From the sequence record OR413581.1: 64,000 bases of DNA; one strand, given 5' to 3'. The notes beneath the pieces are model-generated. The model was given only the letters and a program-made list of their open reading frames with translations. It did not search any database and had not been told where the DNA came from. This document shows, one piece after another, positions 10,131 through 30,342 of the stretch. Position 1 is the stretch's first letter. The number at the start of each line of letters is the position of its first letter. A program made the translations under genes and the position numbers.

Positions 10131-10640
10131 ATGTTTACTGCGCCAACCGTGCAGGTGGGGCAAGGTCTTAACTTGGTGGTACACGACCAGCGGTTAATCG
10201 ACCTCTGCGACACAAGCATAATTACTGCGATGATGGACCATAACCCTTTAGGTGACTACGGAAATACCAGCGAGATTTTGGCTGTTGCTGCCGTCCTCCG
10301 TCGTATTTACGGTCAAATAACCATCGTAGATCTCTGTAACTTCATTGACAACCACAGAGATTTAACTAAAGGGTTGGTCGCACTTACTCAAGATGGGGTG
10401 TCAAGTTTTGACAGTTCTCTTGGTAATTTCCTAGACATCGGTTCCGGGTTCGACTCCGGGCTAATGTTCATCACTCGTGAACGCTACGTCGCCGTCTGGG
10501 AATTTCTGCAACGCATGGGTGTGCATGTTCCTGCAAAGATCATGCATTACCAAACTTACGACCTGAATATTTTCGGGGAGCCAGGGTTATGGATAAAACC
10601 AGTACACCTTGGCCTTGATGGCTACACCATCAAGTGTTAA
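10131..10640 (+). CDS. Hypothetical protein
   Basis: ATG at 10131 follows AAGGAG; ends at a strong terminator. Confidence 0.7.
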   Translation: MFTAPTVQVGQGLNLVVHDQRLIDLCDTSIITAMMDHNPLGDYGNTSEILAVAAVLRRIYGQITIVDLCNFIDNHRDLTKGLVALTQDGVSSFDSSLGNFLDIGSGFDSGLMFITRERYVAVWEFLQRMGVHVPAKIMHYQTYDLNIFGEPGLWIKPVHLGLDGYTIKC

Positions 10641-10647
10641 GTCACTA

Positions 10648-10697
10648 GGCGTACTCTCTTCGGGGAGTACGCCAATCTTATTTTTTTTTATTTTTTT
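10648..10697 (+). terminator. Rho-independent terminator
   Basis: GGCGTACTCTC-TTCG-GGGAGTACGCC plus a long T tract. Confidence 0.9.
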
Positions 10698-11262
10698 GGT
10701 TACTTTTTAACCAACCGGTTAAAGGGGTCTGGGAAGCATCAGAAAACGATTAGGTGGTATCGACGTAGGGTAGCTCGTTTTTGGCAGTTTATCGTTTTCT
10801 AGGGTCGGTTACGTGCGTTTTAGAGGGGGTTATGTATCGAGACAGAGAATTTATTTTTGTCGGGGCGAGGAAATTCAGGGAATGGGGATTCAGGATTGTA
10901 TGTTTTTTAACCAGTTATTAAAAACGCTCTAGAAAGCGCTAGAACGAGATTTAACTCAGACCCAGTACACTTGGGTTCCCCATACCGGAAAATCGCGCCA
11001 GCGGGCCGCTGAGAGCGCGAGAGTGCCATTCCCGTTTCGGTTCCGGGACGACGGTCGCGGCCGGCGACGACGATCACACGTTGGGTAGCACTTCGTGCCA
11101 TGTCTGGGTGAAAACTGGATCGTTCTGTAACCGACACACACTGTCGGTTACTTACGAGTTCTTTGGGTTGTTTAACTCGCTCTAAAATCCCCCTTAGGGG
11201 ATAATTTAATCTAATTCTCAAAATTTCTTTTTAAAACAATCACTTAGATTGTTTTTTAGATT

Positions 11263-11484
11263 GATCCTGTGGATCGGGTCGAAGACCCTTTCCTTATACG
11301 CGTGCGCGTGCGCACACCCGTATCCTCCAGGATCTTTTAAAATATATAATAATATTAAATATAATAATACCTTTAGGTATTATATTTAATTATTATAATT
11401 ATTTATATAAATAAATATATTAATATATTAAGATCTTAAAACGCGTGCAGGCGCGCGCGTGATCCTTATTAAGAGATCGTGATC
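11263..11484. other. Candidate replication origin / DNA-unwinding element
   Basis: 7 GATC in 222 bp, a 106-nt core (11335-11440) with only 6 G/C, several perfect palindromes and alternating purine-pyrimidine flanks. Confidence 0.5.
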
Positions 11485-11769
11485 GGACGGAAGTCCTAGT
11501 TTGGGTACCCTGTGTATTTTTTACGTGGTTTCCCTATCGTGTGTTCAGACCACCACTCGATGTCCAAAAACCCATAGCTTCGGTGGTCGCCTCCCTGGTC
11601 GGTAGACTCTGACAAGTCGACCCACAACACCAACCCGTCCGGGGACGGATTTTTATTCCAACGACAAGCTCCACGAAAATCCCCGCAGAGGGACTCACTG
11701 CTGTGTGACTCACCGGCTCCTGGACGCCTACGCCTCGAGCCGGTAATTTTTTGATTACGTGAGTTTGTT

Positions 11770-12360
11770 GTTATATGCGAATAGCGATTGACCGCGCCAA
11801 TGGTCCAATCACTTTTAAACCCTGCACGCTAGGGCTCCAAGTCCTGGGATTGTTACCCAGGACGCTTTTTCGAAAATACCTACCGTGGTGTCTTCGACAA
11901 AGCGCAATCTAACACTGCGTGATTTATTATGTTCTGGAAAACTTTCGCCGTGGAACAGAACCGGTGAGCGTCGGCGGGGATTCCGACAATCACCACCCAT
12001 TCAGGTACTCGGTAAATAACCGACCTGCCGACGTAGCACCGTCGGGCGTAGTTCGGTTTGCGAGAGTGTCGAGAAAGTCGACTGCGCACCCATGACAAAA
12101 TCCGAGTTGACCGTGGCAGCGCCAGAGGACTGGGCAGCGGAGAGACGTCGTTGAACTTACCTCCGATAGTTATCGCTGATTCCGCTCTGGCGTCGGGCCA
12201 AAACTGATTCGAATTCGGCGTTGCGTCGAAAAGGGGTCTGCGTGTAGAACCGCAGACTTGGGGGATAACTCCGATGAGGAGGTTGGTCCATATCTTGCCG
12301 GCTCGGAACAGACGAGAGGGGTGGGTACTCCCGTTGAGAAACGCCAGTACCTGGCTGATT
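11770..12360 (+). ncRNA. Candidate large structured non-coding RNA A
   Basis: No credible ORF; many stems plus a long-range 8-bp pair 12002-12009/12346-12353. Strand is inferred. Confidence 0.4.
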
Positions 12361-12369
12361 AAAATTTAC
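12361..12369 (+). promoter_or_regulatory. AAAATTTAC motif (middle-promoter-like)
   Basis: Copy of the motif at 8930 and 34758, upstream of ORF 12413. Confidence 0.5.
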
Positions 12370-12412
12370 AGATTCTGCGTGAGGTATGATAAACCAAACG
12401 GAGAATTAAATC

Positions 12413-12904
12413 ATGACCACGATAGCGTTCGATGGAAAAGTCTTAGCTGCTGACGGCCAGTTAACCCGTGGGTCGAATATCTGCAACCTGAATACCCAGA
12501 AGTTATTCATCTGCCCTTCTGACGAGGAGTGGTGGATTACTGGTGAACGGATTGTGGCGTTCGGAGTAAGCGGCGACATCACAGGACAATTGGCCCTGCT
12601 GGAAACGGTCCGCTTGAGACCCGGCTACAAGGGGTTAACACAAAGCTCGCAGTTACCTGCGAAGATGGATTTTACTTTCCTGATGCTTCTGGCCTCAGGG
12701 AAAGCGATAGTCGGTGGGAAGCGTGAAGACGACGTGTCGTTGTGGTGGAGTGAAGCCACACCACCTCTGGCAACCGGAAGCGGTTACGAGTATGCGTTGG
12801 GTGCGATGAAGATGGGCGCGAATGCGGTTCGTGCTGTTGAGATTGCGTCCGAATGCGATATCTACACCGGTGGTGAGATTAGCACTTACGAACTACGGAG
12901 GTGA
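12413..12904 (+). CDS. HslV/proteasome beta-subunit-like Ntn threonine peptidase
   Basis: N-terminus M-TTIAFDGKVLAADGQ, GSG motif and C-terminal DIYTGG; GGAG SD. Confidence 0.7.
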   Translation: MTTIAFDGKVLAADGQLTRGSNICNLNTQKLFICPSDEEWWITGERIVAFGVSGDITGQLALLETVRLRPGYKGLTQSSQLPAKMDFTFLMLLASGKAIVGGKREDDVSLWWSEATPPLATGSGYEYALGAMKMGANAVRAVEIASECDIYTGGEISTYELRR

Positions 12905-12997
12905 ATCATGCGGGAGTCAGAAGCACGCAAGCTTGACCCCATCAATCGCCTGCGATAACGGGGTAGCGCATCCGTATAAACACGTTTAAAGAATTCT

Positions 12998-13073
12998 GGG
13001 GGTATGGCGCAATTGGTAGCGCACCGGTCTCCAAAACCGAAGGTTCGAGGTTCGAAACCTCGTGCCCCCGCCA
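12998..13073 (+). tRNA. trnW: tRNA-Trp (CCA)
   Basis: 76-nt cloverleaf: GGGGGTA/TGCCCCC acceptor, GCGC D stem, loop CT-CCA-AA, T arm CGAGG-TTCGAAA-CCTCG, encoded CCA end. Confidence 0.95.
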
Positions 13074-13137
13074 CATTTAGCCAACGAATTCAGGTTCAAC
13101 ACAGAAGACACAGATTTGTCAACTGTTGGAGAACAAC

Positions 13138-13380
13138 ATGAATTTGTACTTGCTAGAACGAACTGACGATATCGGGTATGATGAATTTGATTCCATAATC
13201 GTGGCGGCTCCTACGGAGCAAGCCGCGTGTGCAATTCCTCCCGACCGTGGTCATTGGATGGACTGCCGCTGGTTACCGAAAGAGCGCTGGGATGAAGGGC
13301 TTACCCTGACCGTTACTCTTATCGGCACTACGCACTATCCTGCTGGGACCGTCGTTCATGAATCGTTCAATGCTGGCTAA
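13138..13380 (+). CDS. Small phage hypothetical protein
   Basis: GGAG SD before ATG 13138; MNLYLLERTD...SFNAG resembles a widespread small phage protein family (recalled, not searched). Confidence 0.75.
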   Translation: MNLYLLERTDDIGYDEFDSIIVAAPTEQAACAIPPDRGHWMDCRWLPKERWDEGLTLTVTLIGTTHYPAGTVVHESFNAG

Positions 13381-13382
13381 AC

Positions 13383-13960
13383 AGTGGGCTTCGGCCCACT
13401 AACCCTATTCGAGCCGTGATACTTACTCAGATTGTGCGGGTTGATGTCCCGCATGAGCCGGTAGCAGCTCAGACCTACGGTAGACCAATAAATCCGTAGC
13501 AGCCAGGTACACAAAGCACCAGGTCGCTTGTACAGGATGCTGGGTATCTGACCGGTCATAACCTCATTCGATACGAGACACGTTTATGCATGAAATACTC
13601 CAGTACATCAGGATGTTGATTTCCAACGTCCGGTTCTGGGTATTCAATCATGTTTGGTTTACAGGCGATGGGTTTTCCCGCAAGGGCCCCACTTACAGAC
13701 TGGCGTCTCCACGACAACCGTCCCTAGGGGACAGGCAAGCACCGGCCCATTAAGCCGCTACGCTACGCCTGTAAATCCACAATCTGATAACCGAATGGGA
13801 TTGAGTTCCCAGTGTTAGGGTGACTGTGTGTCACCGTAGGCGCGGTACCTCATACGGCCGGTACGCCACGAATGTACGTGATAGCGGGTGGTGCTTGGAG
13901 ACGCTAAGACCTGACCTTGCGGCCAGGCTCAGAAGAAGAAGTCCATCGCCCGCATTCAGA
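13383..13960 (+). ncRNA. Candidate large structured non-coding RNA B
   Basis: No credible ORF; starts with a UUCG hairpin, has at least 7 stems and a 10-bp long-range helix 13658-13667/13766-13775. Confidence 0.45.
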
Positions 13961-14161
13961 AATGAATTTAGGTTAATTATTATTTATGGAAGTGATGAAA
14001 TCGTTTACGTGATAACTTAGTAGTATGCAACGAACAATACCAGAGTGACTTTACGAGGTTACTGTGGTATATGTCGGTGCTCCGGGCAACGTGTTGCCGC
14101 AGATAAGCCCGAGGGAGCTGAGTGCACTAACACACGCCGGGATGCACCGGCACCTTACAAC

Positions 14162-14231
14162 GGCTTTGTAGCTCAGGTAGGTAGAGCAGCCTCTTTGAGG
14201 AAGGTCGCCGGTTCGAGACCGGTCAAAGCAA
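14162..14231 (+). tRNA. tRNA-like element with collapsed anticodon arm (pseudo-tRNA)
   Basis: Canonical D arm (GCTC..GAGC) and T arm (GCCGG-TTCGAGA-CCGGT) and a 6-bp acceptor; the anticodon arm is CCTC-TTT-GAGG, about 4 nt short; no CCA. Confidence 0.7.
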
Positions 14232-14310
14232 GAGCAGCGAAGTTAGAGGAATTAACACCCGACTCATAATCGGATATTTCGACGGTTCGAATCCGTCCGT
14301 TTGCTCGCCC
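14232..14310 (+). tRNA. Atypical tRNA with CAT anticodon (Met or Ile2)
   Basis: Anticodon arm CCCGA-CTCATAA-TCGGA, T arm GACGG-TTCGAAT-CCGTC; the acceptor stem pairs only with a bulge; no clean CCA. Confidence 0.7.
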
Positions 14311-14389
14311 CATTTGTGTTATCCTTATCCCGAAGGCATTCGAAATAAGACGCGTATCCACACACGGGTCAAGGGTAACACGAACCACT

Positions 14390-14650
14390 TCCGCGGTCAC
14401 CGTGTCCATTGCCGCCTACCTGCATGGGCTGTCCTCCGACACGGTGACTTCGGGCCAACTTACAGGCCAGGGCCGTTTGGGTTTTTCTTACGCATCCATC
14501 CAGAGCCACCTCGCGCCCTAGTCTGTATACCCCTTTTCTGTTCCTGGTTTGCCAACTAAATCAATTAAGCCTGGTGCGTTGCCCTGGGAACAGAAAAACT
14601 TATTCGGTTACACACCGAACCCACCCACGAGGGATATGTCGTGGACTACC
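14390..14650 (+). ncRNA. Candidate structured non-coding RNA C downstream of the tRNA pair
   Basis: Two perfect 11-bp helices (14396-14406/14438-14448; 14534-14544/14587-14597) plus smaller hairpins. Confidence 0.35.
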
Positions 14651-14685
14651 AATAGAAGCAGCAATAGTAGTAAGAAGGAAGCAAC

Positions 14686-15507
14686 ATGTTTACAGTTAAA
14701 CGTGTAATTGATGGTGACCGCATTATTACCGAGCATGAAAAGGTTCGTATCGGTGACCGTAAGTCTCGTGTATTCCGCGAGGCATTAAAAATGCTCGAGA
14801 ACGAGCGCTTCGACATCGTTGTCGATGATGAAAAGTTAGCCCTTAATCCGGGGTTAAAACGCGTTGCCCCTGATGTGCCTGATCCGAACACCATGCATTT
14901 GTCTGACTACTGCAGCTGGTCGCACAGATTATATAAAAGTCAGGTTTATGCACACACGTATTTGCGGCAGCTTTTCCCCAACCTTATTATCCCCGATTTG
15001 GAAACGGTCGAGGTGTTTAACTGCAACGCACGCGAGTTTATTAGCTACGTGCTAGATAATAAGGGCAATGCTATCTTGGTACTGGACACAAATTCCCGCA
15101 TACCTGATGCTGTGGCTAGCATACGTGGTGAAATCATCGGTTACGGTACTTCCCCAGAGAAATTAGGCTGGTACAAACCATCTCCTGATAGCGACATGGC
15201 GATCATTGTCTACACTCAGGAAGAACTGCAACAAGTCGAATTAGAGCCTGGTCCATCTATCGAGTTCACTGATGTCCAGGAGCAGTCGCAGTGGATTAAC
15301 GGTGAGTCTGTTGTTACTGTTTTAAAAGGCGCTCGCCCTGGCGACCGGTCAGTCGATGAACTGATTGGCGCAATGTGCATCGAAGAAGAATCTGGATACG
15401 ATCCTGATAACCAGATCAGTACCGGTGCGTTGTACGAACTGTTTTATAAAGGCGACGAAGTCTACGTGGTTAACTCTCACGGTAAGACTACCGACGTCCT
15501 TCGCTGA
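14686..15507 (+). CDS. Hypothetical protein
   Basis: 273-aa ORF with AAGGA SD. Confidence 0.8.
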   Translation: MFTVKRVIDGDRIITEHEKVRIGDRKSRVFREALKMLENERFDIVVDDEKLALNPGLKRVAPDVPDPNTMHLSDYCSWSHRLYKSQVYAHTYLRQLFPNLIIPDLETVEVFNCNAREFISYVLDNKGNAILVLDTNSRIPDAVASIRGEIIGYGTSPEKLGWYKPSPDSDMAIIVYTQEELQQVELEPGPSIEFTDVQEQSQWINGESVVTVLKGARPGDRSVDELIGAMCIEEESGYDPDNQISTGALYELFYKGDEVYVVNSHGKTTDVLR

Positions 15508-28618: not shown

Positions 28619-29986
28619 GTGAGAAAGGTACCAAAATTCTACGGAATATCCGGCCGGTTGGTTAGTCAGGATAACTATTTGTCCGATTTGCAAATAGAAG
28701 CTGCTGCCAAAGGTATTAAACCACCCACTATTATTAACGATGTCGCCGTTAACGGGGATGCGATCGAGGTTGCTGAACTTATCGATCGCATGGTACAGAA
28801 CAGAATCGTTGACGAAGAACTGAACTCTGCACCGATTTGTAGTTTGGATTGTCCGGCACCGATCGCGCATCGTTACAATCTCGGTTGTAAGTGTCCGACG
28901 TGTGGCTATGTTGTAACTGAACATCGAATTGAATCCGATGTCTGGTTACGTGCACCTGATGAAATGGGTAACTTCGTCAACCCACGATTCTGGGCAATGT
29001 TCAATGCTTTCTTTAATAGCAAGTTGAAGAAGTTTGAACGTAACAAGGTCACTATCGAACGCGGTAATGACTTGATGATGTGGATGATTGACCCGTATTA
29101 CCGTATAGAAGAACCAGACGGTAAACGCGCACATGCTGTGAAACGTGTATTGGAAGAACATGGTTTCGTTCGTGGCTTGCGCAATCTGGTTGATAACCAC
29201 GTTAGTATCTTTAACATCCTTACCACGCCAGAAGCCTGGAAGGAAATCTTCGCACCTAATCGGCATAACGCCGCTGAAGGTGAACGCTTACGTTTACAAT
29301 GGAAGGAGCTATTCGAAACACAACGCCACGCATTCTTCCCAAGACACTTACCGTTAATCTCCTCTAAGCTTATTGTTACTGAGGAAGGTCGACGTGGTGT
29401 CATGGTAGACCCAGTGTTCACGGGTGCTATTGACGCGGTGAAAAATATCGCGTTGCTCTATACGCGGCGTAAAGCGATCGAACCACGTTTTCTGATTAGT
29501 CGCGCTTTGAAGGCGAACCGTCAGTTAACGTACTTCCACATGGACTTCCGTCGTGAGTCTATGGAAGGTAAACCGGGTGACTATCGTGCGAAATTGGGTT
29601 CTACCCATATCCCGTTCGGTGGTCGTGCAACCATCTCACCTATCTCAGAACCACACGATGCCTGGAAGTTAAAAGCACCATGGCGTTGGATGGTTGGGTT
29701 GATGTCGACCCACATCGAGAACAAACTGCTACGACGGGGTTATTCGTCACGGCAATGTGAGCGTATCGTTGCAAAAGCGGCAATGCAGTATGACCCGCTT
29801 GTAGATGAAATCTTTAAAGAACTGATTCGTGAATCCCCAGGCGGTCTTGGGATCATGGTCATACCGTTACGTAACCCAACGCTGGTACAGTTGTCTATTC
29901 AAACGCTGTACATCGATGAAGTTGTTACCGATGTTAACCAGTGTTCGCTGCGTATCTCTGACCGTGTGATCAAGATGGCTAACGGT
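28619..29986 (+). CDS. rpoC: Non-virion RNA polymerase beta-prime N-terminal subunit, exon 1
   Basis: Zn-finger CSLDC...CKCPTCG, GKPGDYR, RNPTL motif; ends ...KMANG at the group I 5' splice site. Confidence 0.85.
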
Positions 29987-30342
29987 TCGAAAAGAGCCCC
30001 ATCGGACGGGAAACCTCTGATGCGTATTCTCCTGAAATGCTGGGAAACCCTAAAGCGTATCTACCAGAAATGGGGACGAAAGTCTGAAACAACAGATACG
30101 ATGACCTACGCTAAACAATACTGCTAAGGGTTGTGTTAATGGGTAATCAGCAGCGAAGCCTCGTGAGAGGAACGTTCAACGACTATCGCTGAAATGCGAG
30201 TAGGGGTCCCAGTGGACTTCGAAGTGGGAGAACACCTAAGGCGAAAGCTATGGTGAAGATATAGTCTGTGCCTTATCGAGAGATAAGGAGGGTGTCTTAG
30301 CACACCTGCTGTATACGGAAACGGTATACAGTGGACAAACAG
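29987..30342 (+). mobile_element. Group I self-splicing intron without ORF (356 nt)
   Basis: P AAATGCTGGGAAA 30035-47, Q AATCAGCAGC 30145-54, R GTTCAACGACTAT 30174-86, S AAGATATAGTC 30256-66; P1 GGU|UC-GAAAA-GAGCC with the U.G wobble; terminal G at 30342; splicing restores the frame. Confidence 0.92.

Follow-up and report, generated by a model that had tools for sequence, protein, structure and literature searches.

A conserved structured RNA with an embedded small open reading frame beside the tRNA island of Salmonella phage SPLA3 and related nucleus-forming jumbo phages

The stretch of DNA analysed here, hereafter the window, comprises 64,000 nt and was identified by blastn as part of the genome of the Salmonella phage SPLA3 (OR413581.1; genus Seoulvirus, SPN3US-like, ~240 kb), a nucleus-forming jumbo phage; window coordinates are those of the record. 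Within the interval 13381–14685, for which the record holds no annotated feature, we found a conserved element of ~525 nt on the + strand (13434–13958, as delimited by an nhmmer profile), in which an RNA fold kept through compensatory changes is combined with a conserved small open reading frame (ORF) bearing a coding signature (13586–13753). The element is laid out as two conserved folded halves, a 5' junction domain (P1–P4) and a 3' half (P9–P14) that ends in a long closing stem, and between them lie ~170 nt without conserved structure, which hold the start codon and the first ~35 codons of the ORF. We regard it as probable that the element represents a new family of large, structured RNAs of phages, that it is transcribed from the + strand, and that the same transcript is also the mRNA of a small basic protein. 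A first-pass annotation of the window had proposed at 13383–13960 a candidate large structured RNA of an undescribed kind, and in this it is borne out by the covariation and by the absence of an Rfam match; all the stems that it listed are present in the sequence where it placed them. The conserved unit is, however, restricted to 13434–13958, its description as purely non-coding is not supported, and the remark that only short, low-quality ORFs overlap the region has to be abandoned, as the ORF at 13586–13753 is conserved in all the relatives.

A blastn search against 50,697 phage records located the region in 61 of them, all belonging to four genera, Seoulvirus, Machinavirus, Erskinevirus and Wellingtonvirus. 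The SPN3US-like phages matched at 97–100% over the full length, SPAsTU and the Erwinia phage pEa_SNUABM_29 at 76–81% over 91% of it, and ~25 Erwinia and Salmonella jumbo phages (Machinavirus, Erskinevirus and Wellingtonvirus) at 69–79% over the last 220–240 nt only. With an nhmmer profile made from the first alignment, full-length matches of ~520–580 nt were obtained in all of these phages and also in metagenome-derived contigs. The resulting set consists of 25 distinct copies, from the four genera and the metagenomes, all of them full length; 17 are less than 97% identical, and pairwise identities range from 50 to 96%. Each fully sequenced genome carries one copy, and in every genome examined its position is the same, an unannotated gap between the last upstream coding sequence (CDS) and the tRNA island, which is the phage-encoded, tRNA-adjoining setting of the GOLLD and ROOL type. 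In the SPN3US group, the element is 98–100% identical although the tRNA island has decayed to two pseudo-tRNAs, which argues that it is not merely a leader for tRNA processing. Conservation is uneven along the element, as the identity between genera is 0.72 for the 3' domain, the best-conserved segment, and 0.46 for the N-terminal half of the ORF.

Beyond this phage clade, nothing related was found in the 185,579 species genomes scanned, and pattern scans of IMG/VR and of metagenomes returned the same clade only, plus chance matches. A 33-nt motif of the phage RNA (ACAAT...TGGGATTGAGTTCC) recurs in a repeated element, several hundred bases long, of Kiritimatiellae genomes and gut metagenomes, but this element has no likeness beyond the motif and no Rfam match, and was set aside as probably a chance resemblance. 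Nitrososphaerota contigs have the 33-nt motif only in common with the element, and match neither our own models nor Rfam. A weak match of the model R2 (locus L051) was discarded as false, since it lies 4 kb away from the pattern match, where the sequence is G+C-rich and dense in ORFs, and a search for related loci with the downstream 273-aa protein returned only SPN3US. No published description of the element was found, the tables of a viral structured-RNA screen (PMC10690425) lying outside what was searched. For the Pseudomonas phage 201phi2-1, small RNAs shorter than 250 nt have been reported, including one that lies upstream of a tRNA (PMC11512511).

The support for the fold is covariation, not stability. 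From 18 copies, RNAalifold predicted 81 pairs, 39 of which have compensatory changes. Covariance models were made for two domains and pairs were counted on the resulting alignments, with column shuffles and partners slid by 1–3 columns as controls. In the 5' domain (P1, P3, P4 and P4a), 97.1% of the cells were paired versus 74.4% after column shuffling, changes on both sides were seen in 19 of the 26 pairs, and the covariation score was 0.696 versus 0.231 for the shuffles, none of 500 being as high; when the partners were slid, pairing fell to 35–44% and the score to at most 0.096. The 3' terminal domain (P13 and P14) gave 95.9% of cells paired versus 82.4% when shuffled, both-side changes in 11 of the 26 pairs, and a covariation score of 0.372 versus 0.116, with slid controls of at most 0.07. 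Domain alignments fitted to a model favour the structure; the unfitted MAFFT alignments contain the same compensatory patterns. In the conserved helices, G-U cells outnumber A-C cells by 82 to 7, which identifies the + strand as the RNA, and pairing on the − strand would be 87–89%. Many unpaired bases, among single-stranded stretches, are invariant. The folding energy of the 578-nt stretch beginning at 13383 was better than that of shuffled controls but modestly so (z −2.37, 1 of 100 shuffles being as good), with z −3.80 on the − strand, and the subdomain 13876–13960, containing the 3' domain, was unremarkable (z −1.67).

The conserved unit opens with P1 (13434–13454; 13435–40/13448–53), a hairpin of 7–9 bp with a conserved 7-nt loop, in which six of the nine pairs show both-side changes and 92% of the cells are paired. 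The 5' junction domain (13457–13556) is closed by P2 (13457–62/13551–56), a 6-bp helix overlooked by RNAalifold, with 95 of 96 cells canonical and three covarying positions. Inside this domain are P3 (13475–81/13493–99), P4 (13505–10/13544–49) and P4a (13519–22/13540–43), which are 99–100% paired and changed on both sides in 13 of 17 pairs; in relatives from several genera, an optional hairpin, P2a, is inserted after P2. A long-range pairing of 4 bp connects 13466–69 (AGCU) with 13761–64 (RNAalifold, columns 72–75/408–411 of alignment A2) and, because it crosses P2, forms a pseudoknot. At its fourth pair, 14 of the 18 copies have G-C, A-U or U-A, all three types occurring within Machinavirus. 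A local alternative, the AGC at 13738–40, is without covariation.

Upstream of P1, directly after the stop codon of the CDS at 13138–13380, is a 7-bp hairpin with a UUCG loop (13383–13400, + strand; 13383–89/13394–400; z −4.5), with which the first-pass annotation had opened the element. The hairpin exists and, as was then remarked, lacks a U-tract; it is followed by AACCCTATT and is not called as an intrinsic terminator by the terminator scan. It occurs in Seoulvirus only, with a compensatory A-U to G-C change in SPAsTU and pEa29, and is not a member of the conserved element.

The middle domain (13658–13775) overlaps the second half of the ORF. Its 10-bp helix P5 (13658–67/13766–75), earlier proposed as a perfect helix closing this domain, is real but specific to Seoulvirus and Machinavirus; its sequence is identical in the two genera, so that it shows no covariation, and in Erskinevirus and Wellingtonvirus it shrinks to about GGTT/AACC. 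P6/P6a (13669–13691), with a GCAA loop, is likewise specific to Seoulvirus and Machinavirus. Compensatory changes are present in P7 (13697–700/13705–08), P8 (13720–24/13728–32) and P9 (13743–46/13754–57), the last of which holds the stop codon of the ORF in its loop. The following segment (13781–13835) comprises an invariant single strand, CACAATCTG, and the hairpins P10 and P11. P10 (13796–800/13807–11) never varies and is therefore uninformative on covariation either way; in P11 (13819–24/13830–35), two pairs alternate between U-A/C-G and G-C/A-U in 7 of 16 copies. The 3' terminal domain (13880–13957), the best-conserved part and the one described by the second covariance model, is formed by the long closing stem P13 (13880–96/13939–57) and by P14 (13904–15/13922–32).

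Between P11 and the 3' terminal domain is a variable arm, P12 (13836–13869; columns 501–552 of alignment A2), which has no invariant column, folds weakly in SPLA3 (z +0.49) and exists in three to four unrelated versions among the relatives. Almost the same arm as in SPLA3 is found in members of other genera (Asesino, pSal-SNUABM-04 and three metagenome phages), while close relatives of these carry other versions. To judge from the sequences, this pattern suggests either that the ancestral arm was replaced repeatedly or that arms were exchanged between phages. Another peculiarity concerns the Erwinia phage Wellington, in which the annotated gp5 (locus L013, 1515–1724, − strand) runs antisense to the conserved 3' domain of the RNA and is probably a spurious gene call.

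The small ORF (13586–13753, + strand) encodes 55 aa in SPLA3, where it is unannotated, and 55–69 aa in the relatives. It is open in all of the 25 distinct copies, which have a conserved ATG region and the same stop codon, and each of the other five frames contains 1–7 stops. Over codons 1–35, within-genus substitutions are distributed 202:131:250 among codon positions 1:2:3, and 14:3:41 in the Wellington clade; by their substitution pattern, the first ~35 codons evolve as coding sequence. After codon 35, the distribution is 125:96:127, without codon periodicity. The two halves of the ORF also differ at the RNA level, as no conserved structure was found in the N-terminal half (consensus energy −0.13 kcal/mol) and the second half overlaps P5–P9.

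The predicted peptide is basic, with a pI of about 10–11 in most copies, and contains no membrane-spanning segment, the most hydrophobic 19-residue window scoring 0.2–1.2 on the Kyte-Doolittle scale. Its predicted fold is a single N-terminal amphipathic helix (residues 2–26, with pLDDT >90 over the first 20 residues) followed by an unstructured tail, and the pattern W-x-[LF]-x-x-[YV]-W-[LF]-[TS]-G-x-G is conserved. Counterparts of the ORF are annotated as hypothetical proteins in Asesino, ChrisDB and pSal-SNUABM-04. The sole protein-family match is to phrog_26199 (E 1e-4); there were no matches in Pfam, and no homologues were found by a word-indexed search of 5.8 billion sequences or by phmmer against 1.84 billion representatives.

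Regarding expression, the contigs of one transcriptomic RNA-seq study contained 59% of the sampled words of the region versus 32% for the neighbouring CDS, and the region is also present in wastewater metatranscriptomes. Such presence fits transcription of the element but does not prove it. Scans for sigma-70-type promoters and for terminators returned nothing beyond chance and are uninformative, as would be expected of a phage with RNA polymerases of its own; an internal TATATG was rejected as a phage promoter, since it is not conserved across the genera and the window shows no enrichment for a related 8-mer. The 3' end is better marked in some relatives. A tRNA begins exactly where the profile match stops in Asesino, where it is a tRNA-Gly, and in UViG11741, and the phiEaH2 alignment contains the same junction. 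In Erskinevirus-type phages, 0–3 nt separate P13 from the tRNA (loci L007, 3236/3237; L011, ~1743; L021, 1373/1372), which suggests that the 3' end is made there by RNase P. The corresponding gap in Wellington is 21 nt.

We infer that the transcript of the tRNA island includes the RNA or adjoins it, and that RNase P would cut the 3' end of the RNA where a tRNA abuts the 3' stem, as in Erskinevirus. The 4-bp long-range pairing would hold the 5' domain against the stretch that immediately follows P9, leaving the start of the ORF to loop out of the compact fold. A ribosome reading the ORF would have to open P5–P9, which would make the mRNA state and the fully folded state mutually exclusive. The main functional product would be the RNA in its folded form, by itself or together with the basic peptide that it encodes; by analogy with GOLLD and ROOL, it may act during infection on translation or on the biology of tRNAs, as a scaffold or a particle. 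A bolder proposal, which we put forward tentatively and hold to be possible rather than probable, is that of a new class of large ornate RNA, specific to one clade of nucleus-forming jumbo phages, which would fold into a defined particle, perhaps multimeric or joined by the peptide, switch between message and folded RNA, and act during infection on the translation or tRNA machinery of the host or against a tRNA-targeting defence.

Several observations weigh against a structured RNA that is also a message. The transcript support consists of contigs, not of mapped reads, and RNA-seq contigs could include carried-over DNA. In Seoulvirus and Machinavirus, a spacer of ~170–200 nt with its own conserved hairpin precedes the first tRNA, so that co-processing with the tRNAs is not general. 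The long-range pairing has just 4 bp, one of which is mismatched in SPLA3 itself, and the thermodynamic z-scores are modest. In addition, the ORF is without a homologue outside this phage clade and its product is predicted only, and the family is confined to one clade of ~240-kb Enterobacterales phages, which means few independent lineages.

The foremost rival explanation is a highly structured mRNA that works in cis only. The small protein would then be its sole product, the 5' domain would regulate it in cis, as a leader that binds a protein or resembles a riboswitch, and the 3' domain would stabilise the message or direct its localisation. We consider this rather unlikely. It would account for the conserved ORF with its coding signature, for the location of the 5' domain directly upstream of the start codon, and for the start-codon segment being the least paired in the thermodynamic predictions (unpaired probability 0.47), and a basic peptide could bind its own RNA, allowing autoregulation. 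However, ~350 nt of covarying, partly invariant RNA would be unusual for a peptide of 55–64 aa, the 3' domain is better conserved than the coding N-terminal half (0.72 versus 0.46), the constraint on the second half of the ORF is that of an RNA and not of a protein, and no known riboswitch or leader in Rfam matches the element.

It is quite improbable, in turn, that the element is a pure non-coding RNA whose ORF is untranslated and has stayed open through RNA-level constraint and chance. The absence of periodicity in the C-terminal half (125:96:127), its overlap with conserved helices, the location of the stop codon within a hairpin loop that never varies, the lack of a homologue of the peptide among the 5.8 and 1.84 billion protein sequences and the omission of the ORF from most genome annotations could all be explained in this way. 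What speaks for translation is the N-terminal half, which has no conserved RNA structure and low nucleotide identity, yet is stop-free in 25 of 25 copies against 1–7 stops in each of the other frames. Here third codon positions change most and second positions least (202:131:250; 14:3:41 in the Wellington clade), and conservation extends to the ATG and to the W-x-[LF]-x-x-[YV]-W-[LF]-[TS]-G-x-G pattern.

This non-coding reading and the two that follow are poorly supported. To a decayed remnant of tRNAs, of a broken protein gene or of a dead intron or mobile element, without a function of its own, we attach very little probability: the SPN3US lineage has lost the adjoining tRNAs, of which two pseudo-tRNAs are left, and the region is gene-poor, with a group I intron elsewhere in the window, but the reading is largely refuted by the covariation, since the element is full length and syntenic in four genera at 50–96% identity with its helices kept by compensatory changes; moreover, the Rfam searches that recovered the true intron and the tRNAs gave no match to it, whether for tRNA, tmRNA, intron or any other model, in the window and in seven relatives alike, and no interrupted host gene flanks it. 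Equally remote is an element acting as DNA close to the conventional start of the genome, whether in replication (as an origin), in packaging or as a cluster of promoters: although it lies ~2 kb from the point where many relatives' records start and adjoins an AT-rich, ORF-poor region, its helices tolerate G-U (82 cells) and not A-C (7), an asymmetry expected for RNA and not for double-stranded DNA, and the sigma-70-type promoter and terminator scans yielded nothing beyond chance.

The element was compared with known families using Rfam, in which no family was found inside it at the gathering threshold over the whole window, at E up to 10 over 10400–15000, or at E up to 1 in seven relatives; the same searches do find the flanking tRNAs and a group I intron at 29967–30288, which served as a positive control. 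ARAGORN found no tRNA or tmRNA inside 13434–13958. The covariance models of GOLLD (RF01998) and ROOL (RF03087) were unmatched in the window (E up to 10) and in the seven relatives (E up to 1). An array of tRNAs or tRNA pseudogenes was rejected, because no cloverleaf (ARAGORN, RF00005) is present in the element or in the copies of the relatives, the covariation also being against it, and so was a group I intron (RF00028), which gave no match in the element and for which no split gene is found in the flanks.

Strongly covarying structured RNAs longer than ~400 nt are rare in bacteria and phages, and are mostly ribozymes or the cores of ribonucleoprotein machines; OLE, GOLLD, ROOL and raiA are the few without a known function, and have recently been found to form unexpected architectures. 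Closest to the element in setting and size are GOLLD and ROOL, phage RNAs of unknown function that are often near tRNA islands (10.1101/2024.12.08.627333). Like these, which are encoded by phages and prophages, the element has at least 500 nt and many helices supported by covariation, is phage-encoded, and adjoins tRNA islands, as they often do (10.1101/2024.12.08.627333). The distribution of conservation measured in the element, highest in the 3' part and lower in the 5' part with a variable linker between them, is also that described for GOLLD. Unlike GOLLD and ROOL, the element is found in nucleus-forming jumbo phages of Enterobacterales and carries a conserved small ORF in the linker and middle domain.

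In its architecture, the element resembles dual-function RNAs such as Staphylococcus aureus RNAIII (which encodes delta-haemolysin), SgrS/SgrT and SR1/SR1P. Two of the features expected of such an RNA, a structure kept through compensatory changes and a conserved small ORF with a coding signature, were found, in an RNA of several hundred nt encoding a small protein, here with a predicted amphipathic helix. It differs from these RNAs in being phage-encoded and in having the second half of its ORF within conserved helices, and there is no sequence relationship. Species 1 and 2 of the T4 tRNA cluster are stable RNAs of ~120–140 nt beside tRNA genes, have no ORF, and are thought to be co-processed with the tRNAs from the same precursors; the element is likewise a phage RNA beside tRNA genes, but is larger and has an ORF, and no homology to them was found.

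Two other known systems combine a folded RNA with a short reading frame, and both were rejected. With tmRNA, the element has in common a structured RNA, an internal short reading frame and a tRNA-gene setting, but neither ARAGORN nor Rfam detects a tRNA-like domain with a tag frame; the element is without a tRNA-like end domain, and its ORF has its own ATG and 55–69 codons. A hok-like type I toxin mRNA would also contain a small ORF in a highly folded message with long-range pairing, but the peptide is basic and amphipathic, not of the hydrophobic membrane type, it has no Pfam match, and no sigma-70-type promoter was found on the − strand.

The element would add to the large phage RNAs a family that likewise resides next to the tRNA island of its phage, here in culturable nucleus-forming jumbo phages of Salmonella, Erwinia, Escherichia and Proteus, and with an additional feature, a conserved embedded small protein gene the frame of which runs through conserved helices. 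It therefore provides a tractable case for asking why phages keep large RNAs beside their tRNAs, and how one transcript can be both message and folded RNA. It also implies a correction to the annotation of more than 30 SPN3US-like genomes, as both the RNA and the small ORF are absent from the records.

As to the neighbourhood, the element had been grouped in the first-pass annotation, as region B, with two further regions, A and C, into an RNA-only island of ~3 kb. An RNA-only island is not supported: two annotated CDSs (12413–12904 and 13138–13380) and a tRNA-Trp gene are inside it, and CDSs intervene between the three regions. The 5' and 3' domain models each matched the window once, with no match in regions A or C, which are thus not copies of region B. 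The tRNA-Trp (CCA; 12998–13073, + strand) was detected by Rfam and ARAGORN and is present in the annotation; the upstream CDS (13138–13380) ends just before the hairpin at 13383–13400, and the next CDS downstream starts at 14686.

Downstream of the element, two degenerate tRNA-like sequences on the + strand, at 14162–14231 and 14234–14305, match the Rfam tRNA model with 37.1 and 30.6 bits, respectively. Both are rejected by ARAGORN, and the first has a shortened anticodon loop. The relatives have 5–12 intact tRNAs at the equivalent site; these pseudo-tRNAs are the remains of the tRNA island that the relatives carry 3' of the element, and the SPN3US lineage has lost most of it. In the spacer between the element and the tRNAs is a strong hairpin (14037–14070, + strand; z −5.2), with compensatory changes between Seoulvirus and Machinavirus, followed by a conserved motif, ATGTCGG, at 14071–14077; together they may mark where the tRNA transcript starts or is processed. 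Many SPN3US-like genomes are ~260 bp longer than SPLA3 between the element and the CDS at 14686, the equivalent of 13000–14700 measuring 1960–1964 bp in the records of SPLA1a, SPFM and Proteus phage 7 versus 1701 bp in SPLA3, and the extra DNA is located 3' of the element (at about 14300–14686 of the window).

Region A (10641–12412) is an ORF-poor stretch of 1.77 kb, with a G+C trough of 0.29 at 11150–11449. The GenBank records of several relatives start within it, base 1 of SPN3US corresponding to about 11227 of the window, and two patches (~11287–11411 and ~12210–12321) are 77–83% conserved in Erwinia jumbo phages. An end of the genome, an origin or a region of early promoters may be located here. 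Finally, the group I catalytic intron located far downstream in the window (29967–30288, + strand) matches RF00028 over the full length of the model with 68.9 bits.

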